Shown piece by piece: positions 3,075-32,796 of a stretch of DNA of 38,405 bases (its first letter is position 1; every line of letters begins with the position of its first letter). The notes beneath the pieces are model-generated. The model saw nothing but the letters and a program-made list of their open reading frames with translations, was not told the origin of the DNA and made no database searches. The translations under genes were made by a program, and so were the position numbers. The DNA comes from Octopus bimaculoides (Eukaryota): the NCBI RefSeq assembly GCF_001194135.2, contig NC_068986.1:15583544-15621948 (forward strand), given 5' to 3'.

Positions 3075-3902
3075 CTAATTACAACATCGCTTAAACATCT
3101 CTTTAGTTTTCTCCCGGAATTGTTTACTGATGCAAAAATATATTATACCATTAAAGCTGTTGTTTATGCATGCCAAAATATTGGTAATTAGATATTCAGT
3201 TTTTGACATGATCACTTCACGATAATTGGCAATGTTTGTGCTTATAATAATGGACACAGGGAATGTTATGAGTAAAAATATGGCATTCAAAGTGATTACC
3301 AGACAAAAGGCTTTCTTTGGTTTTTTGCTTTGCCTATCGCGTTGACCAAGATTAGGTCTACGAAGTAATTTGTATGACATTAGAATAGTGCTTAAAAGTA
3401 AAATGGTTGTTGGTATGTAGGAATAAATACAGCAGAATATGAAAACAGTTATTGTATGAGAAACGAAGGGTCGGTATAGTAAAGTGGCAGAAAGTATAAA
3501 CGAACAAATAAGAACTGTTGATAATGCAATAATAAGGTAAATACTTTTCCTTGAACTGCTCGCTACAGTTAACGGCAAAAATACGGATAATAGACGTTCA
3601 AATGAGATAAGCACAGTTATCGATGAAGACAAATAGTTTAGAAATAGGCTTAAGAGTAGAGCAAAATTAAAGTGTGCAACTGAGCGTTGGTAACCGAATG
3701 GTGGTATTAAAATATCTAATATATCTATCCATAATGCGATAATGTCAACAGCAGCCAACGAAATAAGATATGGAGCGATTTTAGATTCTTTCATCACTTT
3801 GGAACACATGACGACGATAACAAGTACGTTAGTGATACTTCCAAGAATTAAAACAAAGATGTAGCTGCATTGGATAGATATAATACCATATGTGTTGTTC
3901 AT
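3075..3902 (-). CDS. Intronless class A (rhodopsin-like) GPCR, 275 aa, compact orphan receptor; putative chemosensory / FMRFamide-receptor-srw-like (paralog 1, intact)
   Basis: ATG-to-TAG ORF with seven hydrophobic segments and class A motifs: TM1 GSITN, TM2 LAAVD, TM3 ISFER, TM5 YIP, TM6 FLLITFP, TM7 NNSFNGIIY, helix 8 SKQFR, C-terminal CC. N-terminal NNT sequon present. Confidence 0.92.
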   Translation of the reverse strand: MNNTYGIISIQCSYIFVLILGSITNVLVIVVMCSKVMKESKIAPYLISLAAVDIIALWIDILDILIPPFGYQRSVAHFNFALLLSLFLNYLSSSITVLISFERLLSVFLPLTVASSSRKSIYLIIALSTVLICSFILSATLLYRPFVSHTITVFIFCCIYSYIPTTILLLSTILMSYKLLRRPNLGQRDRQSKKPKKAFCLVITLNAIFLLITFPVSIIISTNIANYREVIMSKTEYLITNILACINNSFNGIIYFCISKQFREKTKEMFKRCCN

Positions 3903-5238
3903 ATTTGTCAGTGAAAAATATTGCTTAAGATTTCATATGCAAACTACATTGGGTTATATATAACATAGCATAAGAACAATGTTGTAAAGGAAATATTACA
4001 ATCATGTTTTGTTGCAATTGTTCTTCTGTTCTCCCTGCAGGTATTCTATATTTGTATGTGACATCTCCACTAAATGATTATTGTATGAGAAACATCTATT
4101 TGAAACATATATTAATTATACTGAGTACACTGGATTAGCAGACATGGTTCAGCCTCCATGTGATACTAACTCCCAATAGGAGAAAATTGTCTTCAAGAAA
4201 ATATGCTTTTTAACTAATTGGTTCACAAACAATGAAATAGTGAAAATTAAGTAAAAATTATAAAGAATTGATATAGTGAAAAGTTACCTTGTACAGAATA
4301 AAGATGTACTATTTGATTAGATATTGTCAAAGTTCATAATATATTGGAAAAATAAATTATAGAATACATATATCGTTCTGGTAGATTTGAATTCGATAAA
4401 ATATCGATTAACACTTTGTACAATTTTTATAAAAGAAAATCCTCAAAATATAAACGTTCAACGAATCATTCCAATACCATTGTATTGCAGTTGATGTTGC
4501 TCTCGTTGCCCAGAGGGAAATCTGGTGTGTTCAAGCAGATATATGCTGGTGCTCCAACCGTGACTAACCAATCATTTTAGTGGTATGGTATATTGCACTC
4601 TCTAATACATTACTGTTTTTTTTTCCATTTAAGGGAGAATGCTTTGATTTAAAAAGTCTGTTGGTAATGCCTCTCTTGTTCGACTATGTTGAGAATTTTT
4701 AATTGCTTATCTCATTAACGTTATTTATTTAAAGAACTTTAACATAATGGTTTTGGTAATATAAATATTTAATTAGCATTTAATTACATAAATGATCCAC
4801 GTCAGGCATAATAAAATAAACTCCAGGTAATATAGCATACGCACGATGGTCGCTCTTCTCTGATGTATCTAGTAACATGATAAACTGGTTGTATTCGAAG
4901 CTTTAGTGGAAGGCTATCAGTGCAAAATTCTCTTCGTTGTTTCGTCCTTTCTTGAATTTCTTAATGCCTTAATTGCGTAAGTTAGAAATTGAAAGAATTT
5001 CCTGAAGATGTACCAATAAACAGTGGCGGCATGTCGAATTACACAATTAGGTTATACTTGTTTTAAAATTTCGTAAATATACTTTCTTCTAGATATTGGA
5101 CATCAGTTGAACATTTGACAATATTTCATTTTAGCAGATAACACTCACCTGAAATATATATATAAAAAAAATACAAACTATAGTACATTAATAAATTACA
5201 AGACATTAATAAATAATAATCGTTTTTACTACAATTAC

Positions 5239-5566
5239 AAGGCCTGAGAATGTTGGGGGAGGCTGGTTAGTCGATTACGTCATCCTCAGTGCTTGACTGG
5301 TAGTTATTTTATCGAATCCAAAAAGATGAAAGCATAGTCGTCCTCGATGGCATTTCAGCTGAGAACCGAATGAATCGGAAAAAATGCCGCAGAGCAACTT
5401 ATACGACACTATAATGATCTTGACAGCGCTGTCTGTCTTAAAAATATCGGTTTCAAATTTCTGCACAAGACCAGGAGATCCGGGGGAGGGCGTAAGTCGA
5501 TTACATCGATCCCTGTGCTCAACTGTACTCATATTTTGGACCAGAAAAGGATAACAGGAAAAACTA
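5239..5566 (-). mobile_element. Cephalopod tRNA-derived SINE, family A (OR1/Meta-type core): one decayed copy plus an adjacent 3' fragment
   Basis: Reverse complement reads ...gaggacgactatgctttcatctttttggattcgataaaataactaccagtcaagcactgagg..taatcgactaacc..ccccaacattctcaggcctt, matching the better copies at 16750 and 27111. Confidence 0.7.
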
Positions 5567-5768
5567 TTTCGGTGGCTTTCAAATCAGAGCGTAGAGATTG
5601 AACGTAATGCTGTTAATAATTTCTGTCTTATAGAATTCTCGGCAGAAATAAACTATTCATTATAAAAGGGATACTTATATCGAAAGAAAAGTGTACACTC
5701 ATAACGCGACTGACATGTCATAAACAAGATACGAGCATCAACGATATGTAACTCCATCAGCGATATCC

Positions 5769-5813
<45 letters not shown>

Positions 5814-6516
5814 CATATATATATATATAGTGAAATTCCGGCTGCAAAATGGCCATACACAGAATTTTAGACTGCATTACGCAAATTCTCTCGCTATAAC
5901 AAACGAGGCTTTTAAGAAGCCAAACCCAATCGATATCCCGAATATGATTATGAGAAAGAAAATATTGATTGAAATGAATTTCCGTAATTTCATTTCTGAA
6001 AGAAACTACAAGGAGCTACCAGGAGCTGATATATAGACACTAATACAACCTAATAAAAAGATTAAATTATAACATAGGTCGTATTTTAAATATATCTTGC
6101 CTAAAAGAAAAACTGTTCTGTACATATACACACTAAAATATATAAGTGTGTAGCATTGCAGTATTATGAGAGCGTGTACCTATCGAAGAACTGCGATTTT
6201 GCATGTGATATAACACCTAAATAATGTTTAGTAGTTCTTGGAAATCGTGCATATACGAAATCCAATCAGGTATGAAACGTAGTCTTCCCTAAGATTTTGG
6301 TTTGGGATTATATACGTTGGATAAAGCAGGAGTCTTTATTGTAACATCATATATTGCATCATATTTACACGGGTTTCACTAGTAAATATCTTTGTGTTGT
6401 ATGATAATCGTTATGTAGAGAATTGCATAATCCCATCTGAATGCCAGGTCTTCAGAAGAAAAGAGATTTTTAATCCACCGTTTGACCGTAAGATCTCAAC
6501 CAACCCCACCTCATAT

Positions 6517-6570
<54 letters not shown>

Positions 6571-6599
6571 AAAATACAAGTGTTGAAAACATTTGACCG

Positions 6600-8095
6600 G
6601 TTTCACAGTTTACACTGGTTTTCAAAAATTTGAAATACACAGACGTGGCTAATGTCGGAGTTGTTTGGTTTCTGAATAGTGTTTGAAACTGTCCTATTTT
6701 TATAGGATGTTCATGGCTCAAATTAGTATATGTTTTAAATAACGTTTCATTGGTAGAGGATAGTCATATGATTGGTCTTAGAAATGTTTGTAGATTCCCC
6801 GCTACGTCCCTGCAATAGAATCAAGTGACAATTTTAGCGTTGTAAACTAAGGCTGGTACCGTTGACTGAAAAAGTCGAGCGAGAGTACTAAACAATCAAT
6901 ACTGCCAATATCTTCTGTCAAGTGCTTGGAGAGAAGGAACACGTGATGAACTTTAGAAAGTTTTGTATGCTTCCCGTCAGGACCGTGCGTTAGTGTCAAT
7001 TTGCTGTATTTTTAGCGCCTAAAATGAAGGCCGATTCGGTTGAGTGAACATGCTTAGTTACATTCTAAGCACTCCAATTTTAATGTCTGATGGTAGAGTA
7101 GATAGGAATCGTTTGTATGCGGTGCTGTGGCTAAAACATAGGCTCTTAGCTACTTAGGTTCCTTATGTTAAATGGCAGAATGAGTTTTTTGTGTGAATAG
7201 TTATTTGTGAATGTACTATGTTAAAGTTTATGAAGTCTGTGCTTGTACTTTTGTAAGAAAATATTCTCTTTGTTTATCCGTGCTTTATCTGTGGTATTCA
7301 CCGAACATGGAGTAGGAGGACCTGGAATTTGGGCGGGACTTATTTTGTGCATATATGTCTGCGTTCACTCCTTGGAATCTGTCTAGTATTAGTGTCTCGT
7401 ATTTCAATGGTCAGTCTTATTTCTAAGAGTAAACATTGTTTGAACTATGTAATCTTCATTACATCTTTGATGCTTGACAGTGAATATTAAATTCCTAGAA
7501 GAATATGAAGAGTAATTTTTTTACAATAAAAATCTGTCCTGATTTGAATTTCTATGTTGTGTCTTCAATAAGATTGATGTAGGTCTCACAATTGGGGCGG
7601 CCACACTTTTTGACTTCCCCGATTGTTGGACTCGCATACATTTGCAGGGCCTTGATTGTAACTATACATGTTCACAAAACCGTGTCAGCCTTCATTTTAG
7701 GTGCATCTTATCACTAATGCATGGACCTAGCGGGAAACATAGAATGTTCTAAATCAATCAGATGTTTATTTTCTACAAACACTTCACACACAATATTTAG
7801 AACATTGATTGTTTTGTACTACCACTCGTATTGTTCACTAAATCGTATCACCCTTAACTTACGACGCTAAATATTGTGACTTGATAGTAACACACGGACG
7901 TACAAACATTTCTAAAACCAGTCATGTGACTATCCTTTACCAAATAAACTCCATTCAAAACATATACTAATTTGAGACATGAAGTCCCTAAAAAAAATAG
8001 GGAAAGATTCAAACAGTAGTTAGAAGCAAGACAGCTAAAATATTAGCCACATCTTTTTATTTCAAATTTTTGAAAATCAGTCTAAACTGTGAAAC
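6600..8095 (-). mobile_element. Penelope-like element remnant: degenerate GIY-YIG endonuclease region (~7215-7620) flanked by ~440-bp inverted repeats (6600-7052 and 7667-8095)
   Basis: Minus-strand translation across stops and frameshifts: VKKCGRPNCETYINLIEDTT*KFKSGQIFIVK / SRNLIFTVKHQRCNEDYIVQ / EIRDTNTRQIPRSE / EYFLQKYKHRL. This matches the PLE Cys linker plus GIY-YIG layout (KC.RP.C..C...C.S.NLIY.I.C..C...YIG). The two arms align as reverse complements at roughly 70-80% by eye. Confidence 0.75.
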
Positions 8096-8194
8096 TCCTT
8101 AAATCTTTAAGTATAATAATGAAACATATATTAACTCTTCTCAGTGCATTTTCAACTTCTATTTTACTTATATTTCCACCCGCGTGGAATTGAA

Positions 8195-8430
8195 TAACTT
8201 TGTATTCTCTCCCTCTCTCTCTCCCTCTTTCTCTCTCTTCCTCTCCCTCTCTCTCACTCTCTCTCTCCCCTCTCTCTCTCCCTCTCTCTCCCTCTCACCC
8301 TGTATCTCTCTCTCCCTCTCACCCTGTATCTCTGTCTCCCTCTCTCTCTCCCCCTCCATCTCTCCCTCTCCCTCTCCCTCTCTCCCTCCCTATCTCTCTC
8401 CTCTCTGTCTCCCCACCACCTGTCTCTCTG
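8195..8430. repeat. Degenerate (CT)n polypyrimidine tract with short internal tandem duplications
   Basis: Directly visible. Source of the spurious ORFs 8168-8486. Confidence 0.9.
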
Positions 8431-9081
8431 TATACGCGCTATTTTGTGGATTTCTTCTAGTGTACGTTTCGAAAATCTATCTATAAGTTGTCCTTGCTAT
8501 GGCGAACTGTGCTTCTATTTCATCGATTCTCTCATGCGGAGTTCAAACTCTTCTGTTGAAATATNNNNNNNNNNNNNNNNNNNNNNNNNNNNNNNNNNNN
8601 NNNNNNNNNNNNNNNNNNNNNNNNNNNNNNNNNNNNNNNNNNNNNNNNNNNNNNNNNNNNNNNNNNNNNNNNNNNNNNNNNNNNNNNNNNNNNNNNNNNN
8701 NNNNNNNNNNNNNNNNNNNNNNNNNNNNNNNNNNNNNNNNNNNNNNNNNNNNNNNNNNNNNNNNNNNNNNNNNNNNNNNNNNNNNNNNNNNNNNNNNNNN
8801 NNNNNNNNNNNNNNNNNNNNNNNNNNNNNNNNNNNNNNNNNNNNNNNNNNNNNNNNNNNNNNNNNNNNNNNNNNNNNNNNNNNNNNNNNNNNNNNNNNNN
8901 NNNNNNNNNNNNNNNNNNNNNNNNNNNNNNNNNNNNNNNNNNNNNNNNNNNNNNNNNNNNNNNNNNNNNNNNNNNNNNNNNNNNNNNNNNNNNNNNNNNN
9001 NNNNNNNNNNNNNNNNNNNNNNNNNNNNNNNNNNNNNNNTATATATATATATATATTACCATCCATGAGTTTTCAGGTGAC

Positions 9082-9510
9082 TTGCATATTAGTTCCAGAT
9101 TCAGTTCAGTACGTTATCACTGAAGATTTGGATATGAGACGCGTGTCTGCCAAGTTTGTGCCAAAACTGCTTACAGCTGACCAAAAAGACATTCGGATTT
9201 CAGTTGCACAAGGTTTTTATTTGATTATGGCGACAACACGAAAACTTTTGAAACCTTTGCGTAGGTCTTTGAGCAAGTATCGCCCAGATTTTGGCAAAAT
9301 TTGAAGCTGATTTCCTGCTCAACTATCTTTGTCATGGTCAATGAAACGATTACCTGCTTTACACCTTCCTTCCAAGAAGTGTTGTAAACAGGGGAAATGA
9401 GCAATATCGTCAAAACTTAGTGCGCATGCACAGTAGAGTTAAAGGTCAAACTGTGCCAAGCGGCTTCACTATGGCAACCGTCCGGCTACTTACTGACCAG
9501 AGCACGTGTA
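9082..9510. mobile_element. Rearranged mariner (Tc1/mariner) remnant: mid-transposase piece on +, 5' end and N-terminus on -
   Basis: + strand 9082-9215: SVQYVITEDLDMRRVSAKFVPKLLTADQKDIRISVAQ (mariner linker, W/FVP.L motif). - strand 9234-9340: MTKIVEQEISFKFCQNLGDTCSKTYAKVSKVF (mariner N-terminal EQR..IKFC.KLG). A TIR-like terminus TACACGTGCTCTGGTCAGTAAGTAGCCGGA reads from 9510 on -, abutting (TA)n. Confidence 0.75.
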
Positions 9511-9580
9511 TATATATATGTTAACAAACAAATGCACAATTTCGTGATGAATGTTATCACCCTCACTATCACTGACTCAC

Positions 9581-9621
<41 letters not shown>

Positions 9622-10289
9622 CAATCTATCTCTCTCACTCGCCTAATCTCTCTCTGACCAAAGAAATTCTATTTCCCCCCTAACTACAACACCACCATCA
9701 ATAAAACCTATCATGTATTACATATGCACGCGCACAAATATATCAAACGTATTTGTTTATATGTATATATATGAATATAATGCTATCCTCTTTTAAACAA
9801 CGCACGCATATGAGTGTCTCGGAAGTCAGCCAAAATGTTGAATTTTAACTCCCTTTTGTGAACATTATTCCCCGATGAAATACTCAATTAGCCAGTTTGA
9901 AAACGAAAATTTAAATTAAATTAAATTAAATTAAATTTTGTAATAGAACTAATTGGATATGGAAACGATTATAGGACTAGAATTTCATTATATGGATTTG
10001 AATATCTTTGAGGAAACTGATATCTGCATGCCAATTTCTCCATTTTCTGTTTCTCATATATATATATATATACCTGTAATATAATATGTGACGATTATTC
10101 GGTTGCCATAATGAGACTCCGAGTTACGATGTCGGAGCGGAAACCTGCTCCAGCATCTCCTCATTTATCAAAGCAATGAAACGTTTAATAGATAAATTCC
10201 TCTATTTCCTTAATATCGAGATCTCTTTCATGCTTTTGTGATCTTACCTTTACTATTGATATATATATATAATATACGAGGGACTTCTT

Positions 10290-10425
10290 TCAGGTTCCGT
10301 TCATGAGATCCACTCACAAGCCCTTCGTCGATCTGAGGCTACAAAGCAAAACACTTGCCGAACGTGCCACGCAATGAGACAGAATCCCCAGCTACGTGCT
10401 TGGAAAGCAAGCTTCCTACCACATA
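10290..10425 (-). mobile_element. SINE family B, 5' (tRNA-like) head fragment
   Basis: Matches the heads at 21862-21988 and 36812-36968 (atccactcacaag..cacttgcc..gtgccacgca.tg.gac.gaa..aagcaagctt..tacc). Confidence 0.7.
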
Positions 10426-10464
10426 CACACACACACACACACCTATATTTGACAACAGTGAATA

Positions 10465-11024
10465 ATAAATGCCCTGATGCAGTACCAGGCAGTGGCTCTC
10501 ATGTCTTCTGATCTTAATTGATTGGAAGTGTTATCAAGTACATTGCTTTGTCTTGGTATACAAGATGGGCTACAGCAAATATTCTGCTCAATACCACAGA
10601 TTTGCTTGTCAGTTGCTTGATCTTAACCAGTTGAGAATGTCCTTTAGTGGCTGATGATATGTGCATCTCTGATCACGAGCAGAAGTAGTGGGGCAGCATG
10701 ATAGTCATATGTCGAGAGGAATTCTTTGGGGTTTGGATAGTTCACCTTTGGAAACATGGGTATTTTGTTCGACATCCTCAAACAACCTTTATTCAAGGAC
10801 ATTTTGAGCGGGATGGGCTACTCGACCTGAAGAAAATTCTAAGTAGGCCCCACCTGCAAGGTCATGCGCTGTTTATCTTGATATGAGACTACTATGTCGC
10901 CCACATATGGTTGTGATGCATGTGCCTGGTGTGCCCTTATCAGACGGGTAGTCATGATGGGTATAATGGACTTTGTATATTTTACCCCAGTGTCACTTTG
11001 ATGGCATGCCCTGCTCTCGCACTC

Positions 11025-11071
<47 letters not shown>

Positions 11072-11079
11072 TAATAATA

Positions 11080-11147
<68 letters not shown>

Positions 11148-11160
11148 AATGGTGATGATG
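10465..11160 (+). mobile_element. Probable retroposon 3' end terminating in an (AAT)n then (GAT)n tail; family unassigned
   Basis: GC-elevated non-coding block ending ...ctgctctcgcactc immediately before a long (AAT)n/(GAT)n run. No protein motif recognised. Confidence 0.4.
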
Positions 11161-11484
11161 ATGGTAAAATACTACGTATGTAATCTCAAATTTTAAAACG
11201 AACTCATAATTTTCTTATGTTTTCTTAAGCATTCTCTAGAGCAGTACTATGTGCAAAACCAAACATATGACACCCTAGGCATTGCATCAAAATGAACTTC
11301 TAACTTGTTGTCCCTTGAGGTCTCTGGGTGAAACTTGGAGTCAACTGGTACAATTATAATGCAAAAGTCAAACATATAATAATAACTAGCTGGACCCGTG
11401 AAAAATTGATGGAAAACATTAAAAATGCAAGCATCTGTAAACAGTGAACTGGTGTCATGAGAAATGTTTGCATATTATGAGCAG

Positions 11485-11605
11485 CTGTCTCTACGTTCTG
11501 AGTTCAAATTTTGCCGAGGTCGACTTTACCTTTCGTCCCTTGGAGCTCGATAAATTAAGTATCAGTTGTGTACTGGGGCCGATCTAATCAACTGGCCCTC
11601 TCCTC
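11485..11605 (+). mobile_element. SINE family A fragment
   Basis: acgttctgagttcaaattttgccgaggtcgactttacctttcgtcc..gataaattaagtatcagttgtgtactggggccgatctaatc, the same core as the other family A copies. Confidence 0.8.
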
Positions 11606-12289
11606 GATGTGATTCACCTTGGTGATTTGATAATTCTACACCCATACGATGGGTCTTTATGTTCGTAGCAAAAATAACGTTTAAGTGACTTTTTACAAAA
11701 TCGCTTTACAATGTATCGAAAATATTTAGAAAAGTAAATATAAACTGCTTTATGATACCCTTTTTGGAATTTAGAAATTTGAAAATCTCAGAGGCGTCTA
11801 TGACATCTGCTCATGTCAGAAATTAGTCTATATTATTAAAAACACGAAATATTTCCAGTCATTTTATTGATGATTTGCATATATAAAGGTATAGACACCG
11901 AGAGGCTGTTGTAAGCTGCGGCTGGCTAACCGCTGTATCACATATGCTTGGCCACGGTGGGAAATACTTTTCGTTTACCTACAGACTTTGATGTTATAAT
12001 CACAATAATAAATATAACTTTTTAAGTTTTCAGTTTTCGGAACGGAGTTTCCGTATTCGTTCTTTGTCTCAACGAGTTTCTCGTATTCTAATTTGAGACG
12101 AAACTGGAGATAGAAGTTATTGTGCATTCCTTTATTTGTTGTAAAATGTGCGAACATGTGAACATGTGTTTTAGATTCGAAGAATGAATTTACTCTTTGC
12201 GGTCATAGCAATATCGGTTATCATTGGTTATGGTTGAATGGCGCCAGGATGGAGTCCACAACTTAGGGCATCATATATGAATGGAAAAA

Positions 12290-12331
<42 letters not shown>

Positions 12332-12712
12332 CAGCATCAGAATTAATTTTGCAGGTGTAGTAGTACTAGTACTAGTGGTGGTGATGGTGGTATTGGTGAC
12401 AATGGCGACGGTGGTAGTAATAGCAGTATGATAAGTATTAACATTTGCAGTTGCGTGGATATTTTTTTTATGCTCACGTCAATTTATTCAACAATCAGAC
12501 ACTTTCCAATAGAATTCGAATCATACGGGCGTGTCGCCTTTCATACGTTCGGAGATGATAGAATAATTGTCATTCAAGCAAAGTGGCGGATCTATTCAAC
12601 TACCCATTCCTCTCATCATTCTATGAACATTTCTCTTCGCTTCTTCGATTCTGTTACTTAACCTAAATTATTAGATATCGCAAAATTATAAATGAGGTCA
12701 CATGTCACTTGT

Positions 12713-15642: not shown

Positions 15643-15701
<59 letters not shown>

Positions 15702-21392: not shown

Positions 21393-21439
<47 letters not shown>

Positions 21440-21988: not shown

Positions 21989-23325
21989 CGCTTCATTTAT
22001 CTACAGAATTTCAAATTGTAAATATATATCGCTAATAAATGAAGGTGTATCGATGTATATATTGACATTTTTGAAATTTGTGTTAAGTACCATACATTCT
22101 GAGTCTACTAATATTGTAGTAATCTCTCGCAATATCGCAGTTTACCTACTGCGGGTTTATTATTTAAGCTTACGTTGATTTCTCCTTGGAATTCTTTTGC
22201 ATTTATAATAAAATAAATATATACAAATTATAAAAATAATAAAAAAAGATATACAGTATAGTTATGTTTCTAACTCGCGGATTTTCACATATCGCGGGAC
22301 TGTAACATGCGAAAGTTGAGGGATTACTGTAATGTAGGGATATTAGATAATGCTATATTTTCTGCAATTTATAATACAACTAAGAACCAAGTAGAATTAG
22401 TTGATACTTACTACACAGACGCGCCTCAAGCTATAACGTCGCCTGCGCCTATGCGCCATGCTTGCGTCTATAAACCACGCTGTGTCCATGTTCCAAGATT
22501 TATATGAAGTAAACAATTTTACTAAATATTTAATACTTGGTGTTCGTACAGAAACCACAACTAAACTCACGATGTGTGACTTCAGATTACACAACGGGAC
22601 CGTTCTTGTAGCTAAGAATATTTTAACTAAATGACCAAATAGATACCAAGTAATTAAGTAGCATTTTTTGTTTCTATATTTCAAGTTAAGACCATCTGAG
22701 CAGTAATTTGGCTAGTACCTTTTACAATAAAACCGGCTCGAGAAATGCTTTGTAAGCCAGATTCGAAAATGCAAACTGTGTGGAAGCTCGTTGTATAGAT
22801 ATTTAATTAAATGCATGCATTCATACATGCATAAATAGAAGTATACCTTTTCGTATTTATATCTCTATCAATATATATGTATGTACCTATCTTGCATTAT
22901 ATGCATATGTGAGTGTGTGCGAGCGCGCACTTGTGCATGCATACATGTACATATGAAATTATGTATGTCTCATCTATTTTTTTAATTATTATAAATCTTT
23001 AGTTATGTATTCTCATACATGTAGCTGCATATCTAGACTTGCTCATATATATTTAAATGATAAACGTTTGGCAAGCTTTACAGATTTTTACAGTTCCAAT
23101 GATGGATTGGATCTGTAATTTTCGAATGAACTTCCTCCCCTCTGTTTTCCAGAAGTCTAATTCCTCAAGACTGGTATTTATATAGTGTGTTACATATCTC
23201 AGGGCCACACTATATAAAGGCATAAACCTGAATTTGTAATCTGTAATAAAGTAACTGCAGATTTCTCAATAGTTTAGCGTAGGTGTTCTTTTTTGCACTG
23301 ATTTTCAGCTTCGGGCTGTGTGTGC

Positions 23326-23356
<31 letters not shown>

Positions 23357-23577
23357 TGTATGTATGTCTCTTCTATATTTTAATTATTGTAAATTTTCCA
23401 CCGAGGAGGGAGCCGGTTTCCAGCAAACTTACCAGGCTCCATCTTCAGGATGTAGTTAACACAAACAAATTCACATTTGGAACCTGGGAAAAGTTTTGTA
23501 TATTTTTACTGTTCCGCTCACAGATTGGACTTGTCAATTTTTCTTTCTGAAAATCCCAGTTTATCCAGATTCTACTT

Positions 23578-24130
23578 TAAGCAGTTACTAACAAAACCTA
23601 GTGCTCCACTTATTGTTTCAATGTATATGAATTCATAGTCTGGACATAAAAGCTGGAGGTTATTACGACACTGCTGATTGATGCCGGAAACGTAATGAGG
23701 AGAAACACAGCAACAATTGAGATTACGATGCGAATGGAATTGTGTAACTGTGGTTACAAGTTGTGAGAAAACTACTGGCCGAGCTTTGGTGGATTCAATA
23801 TTTCATATATTGTGGCGAAAGAACTCACGATTATGAAAACCGCTGGTACGAACAATTACACGAATAAAGATAGCAAACGGATAACTCTTGTTATCTTTTG
23901 CGAATAAAGCAACAAGTATGTAAGTCTTAGTCATAAAAATAAAAACAGAAGAGATTACACAATACGGTGTATAGGTATTAGAAAAGAAACGATATGATAA
24001 GGGAATATAAACCGCAAACAGACGTTCTATGGAAATAATTACAATTATCCATGAAGAGTATATATTTAGTATGGTACATTCTACTAAAAATTCTGAGTCC
24101 ATCAATAAGAAGCGTATATGAATTATATAT
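23578..24130 (-). pseudogene. GPCR paralog 3, pseudogene (ECL1/TM3 to early TM7 visible; TM1-TM2 presumably in the 24131-24842 gap)
   Basis: The frame is open from the gap edge: YIIHIRFLL..YSSWIIVIISIERLFAVYIPLSYRFFSNTYTPYCVI. A +1 frameshift near 23862 is followed by *LFVPAVFIIVSSFATIYEILNPPKLGQ*FSHNL*PQLHNSIRIVISIVAVFLLITFPASIS (stops at 23856-58, 23772-74, 23754-56). A second shift near 23640 gives YEFIYIETISGALGFVSNCL, after which homology is lost. Closest to paralog 4. Confidence 0.88.
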
Positions 24131-24910
24131 NNNNNNNNNNNNNNNNNNNNNNNNNNNNNNNNNNNNNNNNNNNNNNNNNNNNNNNNNNNNNNNNNNNNNN
24201 NNNNNNNNNNNNNNNNNNNNNNNNNNNNNNNNNNNNNNNNNNNNNNNNNNNNNNNNNNNNNNNNNNNNNNNNNNNNNNNNNNNNNNNNNNNNNNNNNNNN
24301 NNNNNNNNNNNNNNNNNNNNNNNNNNNNNNNNNNNNNNNNNNNNNNNNNNNNNNNNNNNNNNNNNNNNNNNNNNNNNNNNNNNNNNNNNNNNNNNNNNNN
24401 NNNNNNNNNNNNNNNNNNNNNNNNNNNNNNNNNNNNNNNNNNNNNNNNNNNNNNNNNNNNNNNNNNNNNNNNNNNNNNNNNNNNNNNNNNNNNNNNNNNN
24501 NNNNNNNNNNNNNNNNNNNNNNNNNNNNNNNNNNNNNNNNNNNNNNNNNNNNNNNNNNNNNNNNNNNNNNNNNNNNNNNNNNNNNNNNNNNNNNNNNNNN
24601 NNNNNNNNNNNNNNNNNNNNNNNNNNNNNNNNNNNNNNNNNNNNNNNNNNNNNNNNNNNNNNNNNNNNNNNNNNNNNNNNNNNNNNNNNNNNNNNNNNNN
24701 NNNNNNNNNNNNNNNNNNNNNNNNNNNNNNNNNNNNNNNNNNNNNNNNNNNNNNNNNNNNNNNNNNNNNNNNNNNNNNNNNNNNNNNNNNNNNNNNNNNN
24801 NNNNNNNNNNNNNNNNNNNNNNNNNNNNNNNNNNNNNNNNNNTATATATATATATATGCTTATATACCTACGTATATGTACATACTTACGCCTATACGTA
24901 TATATATAAA

Positions 24911-25561
24911 CGTACGTGGACGTCATGAAACGTGTACAACAAAAAATACGAAGCACAAGTAAATGGGACATGAACTATTCTTTCGAACGACGAAAGACGC
25001 AAATGGAAAACAAAACAAGCAACTTAAAAAACGGCCCTTCATCAGTTGTTGCTATTTTTCTAGTTTCGTATTTCAAGCATTTAACAACGATATACGCTTT
25101 CGATAAAACAGTTGCTCCCGCAAAGCAAATTAAATAATAATTTAGGATTTTGCGGAGGGTCAAAACAGGTAACAGAAACAGGACAGTGAAAAGAAATAGG
25201 AAGGGCTGCTAAGCCTGAACGACGTTGTTGTGGCGAACGCGTAAATCAAACGAGGACAGGAGAAAAACAAGAACATGCCTTCCTTGTTGCAGCCACACCG
25301 GAGAAAAAGAAAGAAACACAAGTTAGGAGAATAAAGATAGCCGATGGTCATGTGAAAGCCATGTGAGCAAGAGAGGATGAGTGAAGGAGAGAGTAACAGA
25401 GTAATAGGAAAGAATAGTGGGAGGAGAGGGAGTAAAAGAATATGAGAAGGAAAGAGAGAAAAACGAAAGAGTAAAAGGTCGCATAGAGAACGTATCAGAA
25501 TTATTACGATAAAACTTACTTGGAAGGTGATGCATGGCGTTTAATCATATAATAAAATAAA

Positions 25562-25562
<1 letters not shown>
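24911..25562. mobile_element. ~650-bp dispersed non-coding element, copy a (possibly the 3' end or pseudo-LTR of a Penelope-like family)
   Basis: Three colinear copies in the window (24911, 29630, 36224), all in the same orientation and adjacent to (TA)n-type tracts. The superfamily assignment is inference. Confidence 0.7.
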
Positions 25563-25592
<30 letters not shown>

Positions 25593-27110
25593 NNNNNNNN
25601 NNNNNNNNNNNNNNNNNNNNNNNNNNNNNNNNNNNNNNNNNNNNNNNNNNNNNNNNNNNNNNNNNNNNNNNNNNNNNNNNNNNNNNNNNNNNNNNNNNNN
25701 NNNNNNNNNNNNNNNNNNNNNNNNNNNNNNNNNNNNNNNNNNNNNNNNNNNNNNNNNNNNNNNNNNNNNNNNNNNNNNNNNNNNNNNNNNNNNNNNNNNN
25801 NNNNNNNNNNNNNNNNNNNNNNNNNNNNNNNNNNNNNNNNNNNNNNNNNNNNNNNNNNNNNNNNNNNNNNNNNNNNNNNNNNNNNNNNNNNNNNNNNNNN
25901 NNNNNNNNNNNNNNNNNNNNNNNNNNNNNNNNNNNNNNNNNNNNNNNNNNNNNNNNNNNNNNNNNNNNNNNNNNNNNNNNNNNNNNNNNNNNNNNNNNNN
26001 NNNNNNNNNNNNNNNNNNNNNNNNNNNNNNNNNNNNNNNNNNNNNNNNNNNNNNNNNNNNNNNNNNNNNNNNNNNNNNNNNNNNNNNNNNNNNNNNNNNN
26101 NNNNNNNNNATATATATATATATATACATATGTATATATATATGCATGTATATTTTTCTTGTTTGCACCAACATACCTATGAATATATGAATATATTTAT
26201 ATGTATATATCGGTCTGTGTATGTGCGTGTGTATGTGTGTATGTGTGTGTAAGTGTCTCTAATTATGGCCTTCCACTACAGGAGTATTTCACTTCTATCA
26301 ATAGTGTCTTTCGTTCTTATAGAGATAATATAGTTACCGTCATTAAGACAAGAGGACTTATGAAGGAAGGAAGGAAGGAAGGCTGTATATCATGAGTGAT
26401 ATAATATTTGAATTTTCAATAACTTTCCATGAAATACTCGTCGATAAACACATGCTGCTTGACTACTGCGTCTGATATTTACATTCGTTGATGACAAACT
26501 CATTGCTGTTGCTGTCGCTGCAGTCGAGACTGTCTGCACTAATTCTGCAACCTCTGCTGATGGTACTGAGGTTGGTGATAATGACATTTCCAAAGCTGTG
26601 ATGAGAATTATTATCAGTTAACATGTACATATTACAATGTTTAACGTTCAGAATAGCAACGGGACGTACATCCGTTGAGTTAATCCGCAGCAATCCCTAG
26701 TTATGATTAATGAGACACATACAATTTGTATGTATACATGTATGTGTATGCGGTGCTGGTGGTGGTGGCTGCGTGTGTTTGTATGCATGTTTCTACAGAT
26801 ACGCCTATACACATACACATATTGATGTTAAAACAAGAAACTCAAAATTCTTAGAGATGTTTATCGTGGTTAAATGGAAGAAAGTTTCTAAATACTAAAA
26901 TATATGCTAAAGGTTTCTCTCTCACTAAAACAAAGCGATTCAGTCATACTTAAATAAATGGATAAGTAAACTGAAATAAAATCTGTGTTAATATTTCATG
27001 ATATCAACTAAATAAATTCATATATGTTTCTTATAAGTCCCCGTTATTCTGGTGTTTTGTTTCCTGCCGATCATTGTTGTGTGATAGCTGCATCCATTGT
27101 AGCCATCGCT

Positions 27111-27529
27111 AAGGCGGCGAGCTGGCAGAAACGCTAGTATACCGGACGCAATGATTATCGTTATTTCGCCTGTCTTTATGTTCTGAGTTCAAATTCTGCT
27201 GAGGTCGACTTTGAATTTCCTCTTTCGGGGTCGATAATTTAATTACCAGTTGCGTACTGTGGTCGATCTAATCGAATGGCTCTCCCCCCCCCCCAGAAGA
27301 AAATGTCGGGCCTTGTGCCTAGAATAGAAATGAAAGGTTAGCACGCTGGGCGTGATACTTAGTAATATTTTGTCTGTCTTACGTTCTGAGTTCAAATTCT
27401 GCAGAGGTCGATTTTGCCTATCATCATTTCGGGGCCGATAAATTAAGTATCATTGGTGTACTGGGATCGATTTAATCGACTTGCACTCTCCCCTCAAATT
27501 TCGGGCCTTGTGCATAGAGTAGAAAAGAA
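27111..27529 (+). mobile_element. Two SINE family A copies head-to-tail (27111-27330 and 27337-27529)
   Basis: Both carry the family A head, core and tail. The second lacks the first ~20 nt. Confidence 0.85.
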
Positions 27530-28679: not shown

Positions 28680-29285
28680 TTATTCTTTTATTTGTGTCTG
28701 TCATTTGACTATGGCTATACTGGAAAACCAACTTGAAGGGTCTCAGTCGAACAAATCGACCTAACGACTTATTTTTCAACGGTTTATTCTCCCGGACACT
28801 TGGGTGGAAACACAAAGACGTAAATACACAAAATCCGGTTGTCGAGCGGTAATAGTGGAGGTGGGGTGCAAACATAGAGACGAAGGCATACACAGACACA
28901 CAGACACACGCACACACATTCATGCAGACATACACACACATATATATACATATATATAGATGTATGTGTATATATATACATATATGTATATATATATATA
29001 NNNNNNNNNNNNNNNNNNNNNNNNNNNNNNNNNNNNNNNNNNNNNNNNNNNNNNNNNNNNNNNNNNNNNNNNNNNNNNNNNNNNNNNNNNNNNNNNNNNN
29101 NNNNNNNNNNNNNNNNNNNTTTTATTCTTTTATTTGTTTCAGTCATTTGTCTGCGGCCATGCTGGAGCATCGCCTTTAGTCTAACAAATCGACACTAGGA
29201 CTTATTCTTTGTAAGCCTAGTACTTATTCTATCGTCCTGTTTTGCCGATACGCTAAGTTACGCGGACATTAACACACCAGCATGT
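28680..29285 (-). mobile_element. Two SINE family B tail fragments (28680-28880, 29121-29285) with microsatellite and an N-gap between them
   Basis: Both start ttattctttta/tttg.ttcagtcattt g.ct..ggc.at.ctgga, as in the 21170 and 35868 copies. Confidence 0.65.
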
Positions 29286-29629
29286 ATTCACTCACTCAGT
29301 GAGCAATGGTAGAAAGACATATGGTCTGATGAAAGTAACTATGAGGTAAGATAGTACATGTATCCATTTAATCAACATATAAACCAGTACCACCAACATC
29401 TCCACTAAAACTGCCATACCCACACCATTCAAACTACTGACGCCCCCACCATCAATGTGTTTGACTTCACTGCCTTCCCTCAACCACCATCACCACCACC
29501 AACATCATCATCATTACCATCACCTCCGTCTCTATCACAATTACAGCTCACACTGGAGGAATAGTAGAAGTGTCATTGAACAGTGAGAAATGTGTGAAAA
29601 TGTGATACGCTATATGTATATATATATAC

Positions 29630-30180
29630 AAACAACATAAAGAACAGCCCTTCATCAACTGTTGGCTGGTTTTCTAGTCTCGTATTTCGAGCGTTTAACA
29701 ACAATATACGCTTTCGATAAAACATTTACTCCCGCAAAGCAAATTAATTAAAATTTGGGATTTTCTGAGGGTCAAAATTGGTAACACAAACAGGACAGTG
29801 AAAAGAAACAGAAATAGCTGCTATGTCTAAACGTGGTTGTGGTGGCGAACGTGTAAATCAAGCTAGGACAGGAGACAAATAAGAACACGTCTTCTGTTTT
29901 CCAGCTACAACGGAGAGAAAGAAAGAAACACAAGTTAGGAGAACAAAGACAGATGGCAGATGCTCATGTGGGAGCCACGTGAGCAAGGGAGGAGGAGTGA
30001 GGGAGAGAGAGTGACAGCTTAATAAGATAGAATAGTAGGAGAAGAGGAGTTAAAAGAATAAGAGATAGAAAACGAGAGAAAAACGAAAAAGTAAAAAGAT
30101 CTTATGAGTGCCCATTAGAATTAAGATAAAACTTACTTGGAAGAGGATGCGAGGCGTTCAATCATATAATAATATCAATA
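29630..30180. mobile_element. ~650-bp dispersed element, copy b (one end truncated)
   Basis: Colinear with 24911-25562 from aacaacataaagaac onward, flanked by (TA)n on both sides. Confidence 0.7.
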
Positions 30181-30605
30181 ATATATATATATAAGATTAA
30201 GCATAAAATCACTTTAATGGTTTTATAAAATCCTTAGAATTAACATTTTATTCTAATTTATAATGATATAAACAATTATATTAAAGGGTGCTGAATAACC
30301 ACGGATTATAATGTCAAAGGAAGGAATCGCAAGACAAAATCTTCAAGTCGGGACAACTAACCGGAGTATACCAAGGACAAGACGGACAATATCCATATAC
30401 ATAATGTATTATACTTGGGAAAATGGCAGGAAAATGTCAGGATGCTTGATTCTGCTACACTAATATGGAGGAGATGCTTTAGTGCTCAATCCTGGTAGCC
30501 ATCCCCAGAAGGGTGGATGGAGAAATTGGATCGTTTATATACAGTATATAAGAACATAAATAATAAATTAGAACGGGAATAAAAGAATATAAATATATCC
30601 AATGT

Positions 30606-31506
30606 AAGGCAGTGACCTGGATGAAAGATCAGCACGCCGGGCGAAATGCTTAACGGTAATTCGTCTGTCTTTACGTACTGAGGTCATATTCCGTTCGGGG
30701 TCGAGTTTGCCTTCCATCCTTTCGGAGTCGATAAATTATGTACCAGCTGCGGGATCTATTTTAAAACGGGGGCGCCAGTTTTCATTTATGTTTCATGTAG
30801 TGTTTTTGGTACGGAAAGACTTTCAAACTTCGTATACTTATCTATTTTGTGTTATAGAACAGAAAAATATTTTTGTATTCGAATTTATTTCATGTAAAAA
30901 ACTGTCTTATTTCGATAATTTCTACTAATCACTGACGTCTATTCAGTTGGAAACAGTTAGCGCTGTAACAGTGTATATCGTATTAATCCCCTAACCCTAA
31001 CCCTAACCCTAACTAGGCTGTTAACCGTAACCGTAACCGTAACCCTAACCCTAAAACTAACCCTAACTCTAGAATCCGAACTCTAAAATTGTTACACACA
31101 TAGATACGCACAGCGTAATTTATTATATAAACAATATATGCGTATAAATTACGATTAAACCGGATGGAATATGTCACAGGGAATAACATTTTTATGACTG
31201 CCCAGCAGTAACTCTACTGAGCTGAATAGACGTCAGTGATTGGTTGAAATTACAGAAATACGACAACTTTAACATGGAATAACTTGCGAATTCCTTTTTT
31301 TTTTGTTAAGAAGACTAAGAGTAAAAGATGTTTTATATGACACATTCTACTAGTGCCCCAAGTTTCAAAGTGTTTCGTTAGTGTTTCGTTAAGAAAATAC
31401 TGGCGCTCCCGTTTTAAAATAGATCCCAGCTGCGTACTGGAGTCGATCTAATCGATTAACCCTTTCCCAAAAAAATTTCGGGCCTTGTGCCTAGAGTAGA
31501 AAAGAA
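30606..31506 (+). mobile_element. SINE family A split in two (30606-30751 and 31427-31506) by the MITE
   Basis: Removing 30752-31426 and one TSD copy restores ...gataaattatgtaccagctgcgtactggagtcgatctaatcga..., i.e. the family A core. Confidence 0.85.
30752..31426. mobile_element. Non-autonomous DNA transposon (MITE), copy 2: 28-bp TIR, 8-bp TSD CAGCTGCG, internal (CCCTAA)n/(CCGTAA)n
   Basis: GGATCTATTTTAAAACGGGGGCGCCAGT ... ACTGGCGCTCCCGTTTTAAAATAGATCC (1 mismatch). CAGCTGCG is at 30744-30751 and 31427-31434. Its left arm is the reverse complement of the right arm of copy 1 (the ORF track shows the shared peptide on opposite strands). Confidence 0.88.
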
Positions 31507-31920
31507 TATATTCAATCTATAACAGTAGCCGTAATTGTTACCAGCACATGTTCCGGAGACTCGAATTTTCAGGAAAAAAAACAGCATTTAGGAAAGTTAT
31601 TGATGTACATTGTGTTTTAGAAACGCAAGAAAAATCACAGCAATAAAAATGGTACGTGAATGTACTGATAGCCTGCATTTCAAGCTCATCTCGAATATTT
31701 CCTGCAGGAATTTTACAAAACAAAGTTGTAAGATAAAAGCCAAACAGCAAAGTAAATTTCTTATACTATTTGGTGAAACGCATGTGGATATAATACGGAA
31801 AAACACCTACACACAAGATATATTTATGTGTATATGTATTAATAAAATGAATGAAAATGAATTAAATTTGTAGTTGAATAGACAAATAACGAAGTTGATT
31901 CTTACCTGTTGGAATATAAT

Positions 31921-32796
31921 TTAGATATGACGGCGTTGCAATATGTATACATTTTGACGTTGAAATTCCGTCTTTCGACAGCATATTTGTTTTAGATACT
32001 GTCGGAATTTTTAACTTGTAATCAAATACGCTATAAAATTGAGACTATAATTTGTGAGAGACAGGGTATTTAAGAGGAACTGGATGTTTTTTTAGTAGTC
32101 TCATTATAGCCGTTTATTACAACCTTAGCGATGGATGTAGGAATCTTGGTGAGAAGGAAAACAGCATTGATAGCGATTACAATGCGAATGGAATTGAATA
32201 ACTGCGATGACAAGTTGCGACAAACACGTTGGTCGAATTTAGGCCGCTTCAATATTTTATATATCGTAGCGATAGAAATCACAATTAGAAAAACCGCTGG
32301 TATGAATGCATACATAATAACGATAGCAATATAATAATGCTCTTGATTCTTTACGAATATTTTGATTAATGTGAATGTCATAGAAACAAAAACATAAACA
32401 ACCAATATTACACAATAGGGTGTATACGTCTTAGAAAAGAAACGCTCGGATAAAGGAATGTAAACGGCAAACATGCGTTCTATGGAGATAACTAGAGTTA
32501 ACCATGAAGAAGCCATACTTAAAACATAAAGGATTGCCCAGGCAAATAAGGGTATATTATTTATGATAGATCTTAGATGGATAAATGTATAATATATGTG
32601 CATCAAGAAATACGTACATATTAAAATCAAATCTACAAGAGCCAGGCAAACGATGTATGGAGCGAATTTCACGTTACGAGTTGCTTTCCTGCAAAATATT
32701 CCAATGACTGCTAAATTACCGAATGTTCCGAAAATCAATATTGTTATTGAGCCATACTGTATAAAACTAATGATAATAATATCTGTGTTGTTAAAT
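31921..32796 (-). pseudogene. GPCR paralog 4, full-length but disrupted
   Basis: The frame covers NNTDIIIISFIQYGSITILIFGTFGN..LALVD..ISIER..FIP..FLLTKIP. There is no in-frame ATG back to the stop at 32841-43; caaatATTTaac here corresponds to caaatATGaac in paralog 1. A frameshift at an A7 run (+ strand T 32087-32093) leads into NIQFLLNTLSLTNYSLNFIAYLITS*KFRQYLKQICCRK...HI*, with a nonsense codon at 32011-13 and the terminal stop at 31921-23. Confidence 0.88.

Follow-up and report, generated by a model that had tools for sequence, protein, structure and literature searches.

Results

The Receptor Array

The window, as we designate the whole stretch of 38,405 nucleotides of Octopus bimaculoides DNA analyzed here, very probably includes a section of a tandem array, remodeled by loss, whose members belong to a subfamily of rhodopsin-class receptors restricted to cephalopods, very compact in size (~275 aa) and each encoded in a single coding exon; their function we infer below. 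By tblastn and the listing of open reading frames (ORFs), four homologous copies of a class A G-protein-coupled receptor (GPCR), here named G1 to G4, were found, all on the minus strand and with a single coding exon. The initial annotation had described just such a co-oriented single-exon array, with two copies intact and two independently broken, which description our searches confirmed; and the identity of 35–40% that it had estimated by eye for G1 and G2 proved to be 37.5% (blastp E 2e-50). G4 shares about 30% of its residues with either G1 or G2; G3 and G4 have about 60% of their residues and 69–73% of their DNA in common. All four copies were recognized by the Pfam models 7tm_1 or Srw/Srsx, the curated cut-offs being exceeded by G1, G2, and G4.

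The copies follow one another at ~8.5–10.8 kb along the scaffold (~9–10 kb in the initial annotation); order and spacing alike depend on the scaffolding. Eight N-gaps interrupt the 38 kb, each copy occupies a separate contig, and at least one gap lies between every neighboring pair, which arrangement means that both the co-orientation and the 9–10 kb spacing rest on scaffold joins. G1, G2, and G4 are themselves free of internal gaps; microsatellites border most of the gaps.

Intact Copies

G1 (positions 3075–3902, minus strand) is an ORF of 275 aa, unbroken from ATG to stop codon, in DNA of 35% GC, assigned to subclade A and encoding a compact Srw/GPR139-like orphan GPCR, with both Pfam models above cut-off (7tm_1, E 1.4e-8; Srw, E 2.7e-9) and a start methionine in line with the N-termini of the family (e.g., 'MNNTG' in P0002). 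G2 (12713–13537, minus strand), in DNA of the same GC content, is likewise an intact single-exon ORF of subclade A, of 274 aa. When the window was shuffled 200 times under a first-order Markov model, the longest ATG-initiated ORF reached 208 aa, with a mean of 107, compared to the 275 and 274 observed. The AlphaFold2 model of G2 (pLDDT 77.5, pTM 0.74) displays seven transmembrane (TM) helices plus helix 8, with a predicted second extracellular loop (ECL2) of only ~5 residues, and a Foldseek search with that model gave TM scores of 0.7–0.8 to many class A receptors, indicating a generic class A fold.

Both proteins keep all the family-invariant residues, namely N1.50, D2.50, E/R3.50, P5.50, P6.50, N7.45, N7.49, and Y7.53, together with the F/R of helix 8, and would probably be working receptors. 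The asparagine at 5.58 that had been ascribed to the array is present in G2, but G1 has threonine there and the family consensus is serine. The family has neither W6.48, replaced by threonine, nor P7.50, and G1 and G2 also lack the canonical TM3–ECL2 disulfide, because of which absences a canonical activation can be assumed only. Since the exact G1 and G2 sequences had no match in a collection of called proteins, both may be unannotated and perhaps unexpressed; a word-indexed protein search with G2 likewise gave no match. The Logan contigs, for their part, are genomic unitigs, not transcripts.

Pseudogenes

G3 (23661–24130, minus strand) is a pseudogene fragment of subclade B running from TM3 to TM6, without a recognizable TM7. 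Its coding sequence passes from frame −3 (24126–23869) to frame −1 (23852–23661) through a frameshift near 23860, and contains at least three in-frame stops ('LFV*LFVPAV', 'LGQ*', and 'NL*PQL'). The fragment adjoins an assembly gap (24131–24842) of 712 N, an estimated size, with (TA)n at both edges. The ~73 N-terminal codons (~219 bp) of which G3 is short would fit in that gap, so that the missing portion, in the unread 5' third of the gene, could either lie there or have been deleted; upstream of the gap we found no N-terminal GPCR homology. Extrapolation places the former start at ~24345 instead of the ~24400 given initially.

G4 (31921–32798, minus strand) is a full-length pseudogene of subclade B with three lesions: an ATA at the site of the family ATG (32798–32796), and no alternative in-frame ATG between it and the stop codon upstream; a 1-bp frameshift within or beside the A7 run at 32093–32087; and a TAA (32013–32011) in place of the helix-8 lysine. 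The start formerly assigned to position 32796 therefore does not stand, the codon there being ATA. Over both frames, G4 is 68.7% identical in amino acids to the O. bimaculoides protein A0A0L8II40 (P0011), and none of the lesions of G3 is present in G4.

Family Membership

An exhaustive HMMER search of 1.84 billion representatives returned 19 matches with E-values under 1e-30, a number that rises to 21 at 7e-27; then came three from 1e-24 to 4e-23, including a fragmentary clade-B member (P0023), and below these in the list a continuum of generic relatives. By this search the family is sharply bounded, with ~21 clusters at 50% identity, among which the Pfam cut-offs were exceeded in 19 of 21 for 7tm_1 and in 15 of 21 for Srw. 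All the named members are cephalopod proteins, from O. bimaculoides, O. sinensis, and Sepia pharaonis, and the window has interspersed repeats 75–88% alike in common with O. sinensis, so that the proposed cephalopod origin was upheld and, for the window, narrowed to an octopod chromosome. In a neighbor-joining tree, G1 and G2 fall in clade A, G3 and G4 in clade B, and a sister clade C stands apart.

The motifs conserved on the intracellular side are E/R3.50, YKLxRPxLGQ in the third intracellular loop (ICL3), NxxxNFxxY, and SKxFR in helix 8, which conserved face would therefore imply G-protein coupling. The extracellular half is the more variable one (2.23 versus 1.49 bits in the intracellular half, p = 8e-12), as it is in most GPCR families, and would thus imply diversified small-ligand pockets. 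The ER and NxxxNxxxY motifs singled out in the initial annotation are indeed present, but are common to the whole Srw/FMRFamide-receptor-like superfamily: among the best 150 relatives, E3.49 occurs in 129 of 150 and F7.50 in 135 of 146. The subfamily belongs to the invertebrate 'ER/NFxxY' superfamily that Pfam models as Srw, an affinity that had also been anticipated and with which the Pfam results and the best solved relative agree.

That relative, among the PDB entries matched by the family profile, is GPR139 (E 1.8e-24), followed by GPR35 (6e-20) and GHSR (4e-19). Human GPR139 and GPR142 are class A orphans that respond to aromatic amino acids and to ACTH/MSH peptides. GPR139 resembles the octopus proteins in the S-WITV core of TM3, the NF instead of NP in TM7, the 'ISKRFR' of helix 8, the YKLRRK at the start of ICL3, and its recognition by Pfam Srw; it differs in keeping DRY and W6.48, in a longer ECL2, in an identity of only ~21%, and in being one conserved vertebrate gene expressed in the brain. 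The nearest characterized relatives of the superfamily are GPR139/142 and the protostome receptors for FMRFamide (type 1), myosuppressin, MIP, and proctolin, which protostome receptors, along with those for RGWamide, form the sister group of GPR139/142 (Thiel et al., 2021).

Evolution of the Array

Since two subclades (G1/G2 and G3/G4) are represented in the array, it would have originated in old local duplications. Loss would then have remodeled it, with G3 and G4 dying independently and G1 alive here but broken elsewhere: the G1 orthologue in another octopod (L011), 79–82% identical in DNA, carries four frame-breaking indels (−10, −2, +1, and −1) plus an early stop, which frameshifted state directly supports the birth-and-death evolution proposed at the outset. 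For this pair dS is 0.37 and omega 0.58, the latter a composite that takes in the neutral branch of the pseudogene. The designation of the copies as rapidly diverging was, in turn, an overstatement, the two subclades being old (G3–G4 dS ~0.64, omega 0.51), and the low identity owes at least as much to age as to rate. Furthermore, clade C has near one-to-one orthologues, 79–90% identical in amino acids, in three octopod data sets; such retention would not correspond to a chemoreceptor-like turnover, and fast turnover would therefore not be family-wide.

Discussion

Our leading guess, plausible though held with rather low confidence, is that these receptors, which would consist of seven helices almost without extracellular loops, may respond in the periphery to chemical signals from conspecifics or from the surroundings. 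Lineage-specific expansions of cephalopod class A GPCRs were described by Ritschard et al. (2019; groups 1–2) and, across 19 genomes, by Nath et al. (2025); like the present array, these published expansions are cephalopod-restricted and rhodopsin-class, in co-oriented tandem clusters with many short single-exon genes, and the reported 825-bp genes of O. bimaculoides Scaffold18646 are expressed in the skin, sucker, and axial nerve cord. The family members A0A0L8II40, A0A0L8ICK4, and A0A0L8GGA3 of O. bimaculoides do not appear in the part of the Table S2 text of Ritschard et al. (2019) that was available. The AcCRa/b/c receptors of Aplysia californica, for which expression was shown in the rhinophore and tentacle (Cummins et al., 2009), are also rhodopsin-like, mostly intronless, and short at the N-terminus, with same-orientation neighbors 9.0–9.2 and 13.3 kb apart, transposons between them, and pseudogenes; they differ in length (319–433 aa versus the 274–275 aa of the octopus array). 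Their TM3 'WITAF(I/V)TFERCLCIA', with FER for DRY, is near the octopus 'SSWITVxISxERLLAVY', a likeness at the level of motifs only, and the 'ERxxCIC' of clade C may be compared with the same signature. The FMRFamide-receptor-like genes of Lymnaea stagnalis (Koene et al., 2024) and the nematode srw/dmsr/frpr genes are large lineage-specific expansions within the same broad superfamily, sharing the similarity to Pfam Srw; the expansions in that comparison form tandem clusters of 4–26 genes with incomplete 7TM members and interspersed repeats, but they belong to other phyletic lineages and the octopus family is far smaller.

A serious rival, if on our estimate a rather unlikely one, is that the family represents a cephalopod expansion of receptors for neuropeptides with an amidated aromatic C-terminus (FMRFamide-related, myosuppressin- or MIP-like), such peptides being the main alternative ligands, with a neuroendocrine or peripheral role (gill, testis, skin, nerve cord) other than chemoreception. 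GPR139 is, after all, the closest solved relative, and aromatic amidated peptides activate every receptor of its protostome sister group (Thiel et al., 2021), but the likeness is remote and the family stands apart from all else by over six orders of magnitude in E-value. The cephalopod expansions of Ritschard et al. (2019) are nested within molluscan neuropeptide receptors and are expressed in the testis, gill, skin, and nerve cord, not strictly sensory tissue; Koene et al. are also cited in support, and clade C orthologues are retained across octopods. Nevertheless, the very short modeled loops and the ~10-residue N-terminus would leave scant surface for the docking of a peptide, and pseudogenes at two of four copies plus the loss of an orthologue elsewhere would be unusual for core neuropeptide systems.

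That the whole array is instead a dying relic, in which G1 and G2 are open through recency or luck, untranscribed and functionless, we consider quite improbable. Half of the copies are dead, as is the G1 orthologue elsewhere, the omega of that pair is 0.58, and the called-protein collection has neither G1 nor G2 in exact form; but that omega includes a neutrally evolving branch, and G1 and G2, which are old because they are only 37.5% identical, have nonetheless maintained 274–275 stop-free codons each, a length never attained in the shuffles, along with every family-invariant residue.

Finally, an artefact of mis-scaffolding, or of fewer loci whose haplotigs were collapsed or left uncollapsed, as the four contigs and eight gaps might suggest, is hardly credible, since copies only 30–60% identical cannot be haplotypes of one gene, the flanks of the copies have no duplicated unique sequence in common, the gaps lie at microsatellites as expected of short-read breaks inside one locus, and loci without N show the same co-oriented layout, with three genes of the family at intervals of 4.6 and 8.9 kb in O. 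sinensis and two copies 9.3 kb apart in a long ENA contig.

The octopus chemotactile receptors, pentameric ligand-gated channels derived from nicotinic receptors, resemble the array only in the proposed role of peripheral chemosensation; as had been stated from the start, the products of the array are 7TM GPCRs, with no similarity to those channels in Pfam or fold. Under the preferred reading of a cephalopod-restricted receptor subfamily, the array is an ordinary instance of the kind of cluster already published for cephalopods (Ritschard et al., 2019; Nath et al., 2025), for the Aplysia AcCRs, and for the FMRFamide-receptor-like genes of Lymnaea.

Organization of the Array

The window (38,405 bp, 34.6% G+C, eight N-gaps) contains four homologous G-protein-coupled receptor copies, G1 to G4, all of them located on the minus strand by both the ORF listing and tblastn searches using the two long ORFs. 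G1 (3075–3902) is an ATG-to-stop ORF of 275 aa and G2 (12713–13537) an intact ORF of 274 aa; G3, readable from 24130 down to ~23661, and G4 (32798–31921) are pseudogenes. When the window was shuffled 200 times under a first-order Markov model, the longest ATG ORF reached 208 aa at most and 107 aa on average, so that the two observed ORFs are beyond chance. A fifth copy was sought by tblastn in 1–3074 and 32800–38405 and was not found; since neither flank is as long as the spacing unit, the array may extend past the window.

G1 shares 37.5% identity with G2 (E 2e-50), within the 35–40% that the initial annotation had estimated by eye; G4 is ~30% identical to either, and G3 and G4 share ~60% identity in protein and 69–73% in DNA. 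At 37% amino-acid identity, and with the pair lacking a DNA-level match, the synonymous sites of G1 and G2 are saturated.

Successive copies are spaced by ~9.6, 10.8, and 8.5 kb. As each copy lies on a separate contig—G1 on 2691–8564, G2 on 9040–15701, G3 on 21840–24130, and G4 on 29120–33256—the co-orientation and the spacing rest on scaffold joins and estimated gap sizes. G1, G2, and G4 have no internal gap; the homology of G3 reaches the edge of the gap 24131–24842. In the register of G4, ~73 N-terminal codons (219 bp) of G3 are absent and its start extrapolates to ~24345, and not to the ~24400 initially proposed. Beyond that gap, both edges of which are (TA)n, no N-terminal homology was found, and the 5' third of G3 is either unread or deleted.

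Microsatellites of the (TA)n, (CA)n, or (TTA)n type flank seven of the eight gaps (2392, 8565, 15702, 24131, 25593, 29001, and 33257), a pattern typical of short-read assembly breaks, and long trinucleotide runs at 1782–2132 and 10842–11214 have a coding-like appearance. Neither Rfam nor the tRNA scan gave a match in the window. A mariner-type transposase remnant lies at 35005–35202 on the plus strand (Pfam Transposase_1, E 5.6e-19), and mariner-looking ORF pieces without a Pfam match occur at 34642–34979 and ~9100–9300, also on the plus strand. An interspersed repeat of ~600 bp is present in three direct copies with 80–82% identity (24843–25576, 29628–30193, and 36154–36771), the first of which starts right at the border of the gap adjoining G3, so that the element may reach into that gap. 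A SINE-like repeat of ~110–200 bp, with many copies and one tandem pair, was located at 11485–11603, 16746–16955, 27110–27529, 30600–30750, and 34266–34376, and also, with 80–89% identity, in the O. sinensis locus L003 (12825–13000 and 19890–20058). Three further pairs are probably additional copies of repeat families: an inverted pair of 92% (16390–16588 and 30950–30752), a direct pair of 94% (37433–37593 and 37785–37945), and an inverted pair of 73% (6587–7077 and 8108–7642). Interspersed repeats of the window recur in the O. sinensis locus at 75–88% identity, and these, in particular the SINE-like repeat, tie the window to octopods; none was common to the window and the ENA contig that carries other family members.

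Independent Inactivation of G3 and G4

At the start site of G4 (32798–32796), taken initially as its start, an ATA stands in place of the initiator ATG of the relatives, and no in-frame ATG occurs between that triplet and the upstream stop. G4 furthermore carries a 1-bp frameshift in an A7 run at 32093–32087, and the helix-8 Lys of the SKxFR motif has become a TAA at 32013–32011; the three lesions are independent of one another. G3, for its part, changes frame near 23860, contains three or more in-frame stops and a degraded RP>PP motif, and has no detectable TM7. None of the lesions of G3 is present in G4. Between the two copies omega is 0.51 at a dS of 0.64; this value, together with the lack of any common lesion, indicates that G3 and G4 were under constraint during much of the interval after their duplication and died separately. 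The ORF listing, the tblastn searches, and the comparison of lesions thus agree with the initial annotation as to four co-oriented single-exon copies, two intact and two pseudogenized by independent lesions.

Family Members and Subclades

To delimit the family we ran HMMER exhaustively against 1.84 billion representatives at 50% identity; 19 matches fell below 1e-30 and 21 reached 7e-27 or better, followed by three more at 1e-24 to 4e-23, among them P0023, a fragmentary protein of clade B. Beyond these the matches graded continuously into generic relatives (5,762 at E <= 1e-3). A word-indexed protein search with G2 alone gave no match and, with the family alignment, returned only 13–17 proteins and missed sequences that the query itself contained, so the family size was taken from the exhaustive search. 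The exact G1 and G2 sequences, looked up among protein records, were absent. That the family is a cephalopod one, as had been proposed, is borne out by its named members: A0A0L8II40, A0A0L8ICK4, and A0A0L8GGA3 of O. bimaculoides; XP_029636247 and XP_036359000 of O. sinensis, the latter automatically named 'cysteinyl leukotriene receptor 2-like'; and CAE1294426 of Sepia pharaonis. The others come from ENA contigs and from the Logan assemblies of SRR11869384/90/91/94; that the Logan contigs were transcripts was ruled out by their microsatellite ends, which identify them as genomic unitigs.

A neighbor-joining tree separated three clades. Clade A holds G1, G2, and the relatives P0001, P0002, and P0006; clade B holds G3, G4, A0A0L8II40, and many others; and clade C, the sister clade, includes the Sepia protein and has kept the Cys pair. 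Since G1 and G2 fall in clade A and G3 and G4 in clade B, the array joins two old subclades. The rapid divergence initially read from the low G1–G2 identity is therefore to be qualified: the identity is indeed low, but owes at least as much to age as to rate.

Orthologues and Turnover

The locus L011, from the Logan assembly of SRR11869390, is the orthologue of G1, with 79–82% DNA identity that includes ~45 bp upstream of the ATG (dS 0.37, composite omega 0.58). It bears three deletions (10, 2, and 1 bp), one 1-bp insertion, and a premature stop, with TM1 and TM4 out of frame; G1 is therefore alive in the window and dead in another octopod. The high pseudogene fraction and the lineage-specific loss of a chemoreceptor repertoire are thus both present, two of the four copies being dead and the G1 orthologue being frameshifted elsewhere; together with the separate deaths of G3 and G4, that loss upholds the birth-and-death evolution initially suggested. 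P0006 (262 aa; L011 1–1399) is this same frameshifted orthologue, open by chance: a pseudogene entered as a protein in a public collection. The protein matches included no close orthologue of G2.

In clade C, by contrast, genes of O. bimaculoides, O. sinensis, and the Logan species correspond to one another almost one to one as orthologues (79–90% amino-acid identity). Three clade-C genes in the same orientation occupy ~19.54–19.555 Mb of O. sinensis CM016863.1, at distances of 4.6 and 8.9 kb, and the ENA contig holds a pair of intact copies separated by 9.3 kb. The middle O. sinensis gene (L003 1137–2066, equal to 14608–15552 of the overlapping locus L012, ~19.55 Mb) is an intact 309-aa ORF, the orthologue of A0A0L8GGA3 (88.9%), situated between two annotated family genes and absent from the called-gene table of the locus. 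Tandem, co-oriented, single-exon genes, as in chemoreceptor repertoires such as vertebrate ORs, nematode sr genes, and Aplysia AcCRs, are accordingly found in the window, subject to the scaffold joins, and likewise as the O. sinensis trio and the pair of the ENA contig; these last two loci have no N and the same layout, making a scaffolding artefact in the window unlikely.

Protein Architecture

The Pfam 7tm_1 profile (PF00001) matched the whole 7TM core of G1, G2, and G4 at 34.9, 42.0, and 32.7 bits, respectively (cut-off 30.5), and exceeded its gathering threshold in 19 of the 21 family members. The Srw profile (PF10324, 7TM_GPCR_Srw) matched 15 of the 21, with 37.2 bits for G1 and 43.2 for G2 (cut-off 22.2), in a match restricted to the C-terminal half (profile positions 185–318). 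The AlphaFold2 model of G2 (pLDDT 77.5, pTM 0.74) predicts seven helices plus helix 8, an N-terminus of ~10 residues, and extracellular loops ECL1, ECL2, and ECL3 of ~6, 5, and 5 residues. In Foldseek, that model gave TM scores of 0.70–0.81 to OX1R/OX2R, H2R, alpha1A, and other class A receptors, with a generic class A fold and no specific nearest receptor. The octopus chemotactile receptors are nAChR-like Cys-loop ligand-gated channels, whereas G1–G4 match 7TM GPCR families only and have the class A fold; the initial distinction between the two was therefore correct.

In the family alignment N26 (N1.50), D54 (D2.50), R104 (R3.50), P165 (P5.50), P216 (P6.50), N249 (N7.49), and Y253 (Y7.53) are invariant or nearly so, and E3.49, F6.44, N7.45, and the F/R of helix 8 are also kept. 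The canonical D3.49, W6.48, and P7.50 are absent from the family, which has E3.49, T6.48, and F/C/G7.50 instead; and the TM3–ECL2 Cys pair retained in clade C is missing in clades A and B, G1 and G2 included. All four features—the three residues and the disulfide—are common, though not obligatory, in class A. The Asn reported initially at 5.58 occurs in G2 only, G1 having Thr and the consensus Ser. The ICL3 motif YKLxRPxLGQ is strikingly conserved; it is (G2 residues 178–188) the most conserved non-helix stretch from clade A to clade C, perhaps as a site where G protein or arrestin binds, and GPR139 has YKLRRK only. The alignment columns vary more in the extracellular half (entropy 2.23 bits) than in the intracellular half (1.49 bits; p = 8e-12).

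Nearest Characterized Receptors

In a profile search of the PDB the family was closer to human GPR139 (E 1.8e-24) than to other characterized class A receptors, GPR35 (E 6e-20; to one decimal, 5.8e-20) and GHSR (4e-19) coming next, and a fish GPR139 was the sole named non-cephalopod match in the word-indexed family search. GPR139 resembles the family in the S-WITV core of TM3, the NF in TM7, the ISKRFR of helix 8, and the YKLRRK at the start of ICL3. GPR139/142 are sister to the protostome FMRFamide-type-1, myosuppressin, MIP, proctolin, RGWamide, and NPY-4 receptors, whose activators are aromatic amidated peptides (Thiel et al., 2021). Among the best 150 representatives, E3.49 occurs in 129 of 150 and F7.50 in 135 of 146; being so widespread in the nearest relatives, the ER and NxxxNxxxY motifs mark the superfamily and not the array in the window. 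The initial assignment to an FMRFamide-receptor/srw-like branch, made from those motifs, is in keeping with the Srw scores, with GPR139 as nearest receptor, and with the residues shared at 3.49 and 7.50.

The Aplysia candidate chemoreceptors AcCRa/b, compared here by their published motifs, have a strong likeness to the octopus family at the motif level: they contain FER within WITAF(I/V)TFERCLCIA, are mostly intronless with short N-termini, include pseudogenes, and form same-orientation pairs spaced by 9.0–9.2 kb (Cummins, 2009). In Lymnaea ~450 FMRFaR-like genes occupy tandem clusters, in which some members are incomplete (Koene et al., 2024). For cephalopods, two publications describe class A expansions with tandem clusters, selection signatures, and pseudogene classes (Ritschard, 2019; Nath, 2025). 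Group 1 of the former contains tandem genes of 825 bp, each a single exon, for which skin, sucker, and axial nerve cord are the sites of expression (Ritschard, 2019); within the accessible text of Table S2 of that study, an accession match did not find A0A0L8II40, A0A0L8ICK4, or A0A0L8GGA3. The array is thus one more tandem cluster, pseudogenes included, of class A receptors restricted to a molluscan lineage, and of a type already described.

Discussion

We regard the fold, the family, the array, the lesions, and the loss of the G1 orthologue as demonstrated; the initial annotation stands, with corrections, in what it observed and stands in part in what it made of it. G1 and G2 would be working G-protein-coupled receptors, in which the conserved cytoplasmic face would serve the coupling to G proteins and the variable, almost loop-less extracellular half might form diversified pockets for small ligands. 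For the role of such receptors chemoreception is our leading guess, a tentative one drawn from the genomic signature and from analogy with Aplysia. Clades A and B share a length of ~275 aa, the absence of the ECL2 disulfide, T in place of W6.48, and RPxLGQ in ICL3, and come so far from octopod data only. These 'minimal' class A receptors might be octopod-specific and constitute a GPCR chemosensory repertoire of the olfactory organ, sucker, or skin beside the nicotinic-derived chemotactile receptors, with G1 and G2 as uncalled working members and with birth and death tuning the set between species—a fuller proposal that we offer as speculative and, taken whole, rather doubtful.

The main rival, which is possible if somewhat on the unlikely side, is that the family expanded as receptors of aromatic amidated peptides made by the animal itself: the affinity to GPR139 and FMRFaR, the published cephalopod expansions with non-sensory expression, and the stability of the clade-C orthologues all speak for this reading. 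That the array is a decaying, unexpressed relic is improbable, in that two old paralogues retain long ORFs along with all the invariant residues. A haplotig or a mis-assembly, finally, is highly improbable and is ruled out as the main explanation by copies that are 30–60% identical and by the N-free loci of the same layout elsewhere.

The smell and taste of octopuses at a distance are only partly understood, the contact-dependent chemotactile receptors being ion channels, and we know of no octopus GPCR tied to an external ligand. The array adds no new principle, since pseudogene-rich tandem class A expansions of cephalopods and other molluscs are already catalogued. G1, G2, and their relatives, as members of a defined, compact, and intronless family, are concrete candidates for expression mapping and deorphanization; and the array, in holding intact and dead members together, offers a small and tractable case of the birth and death of cephalopod receptors.
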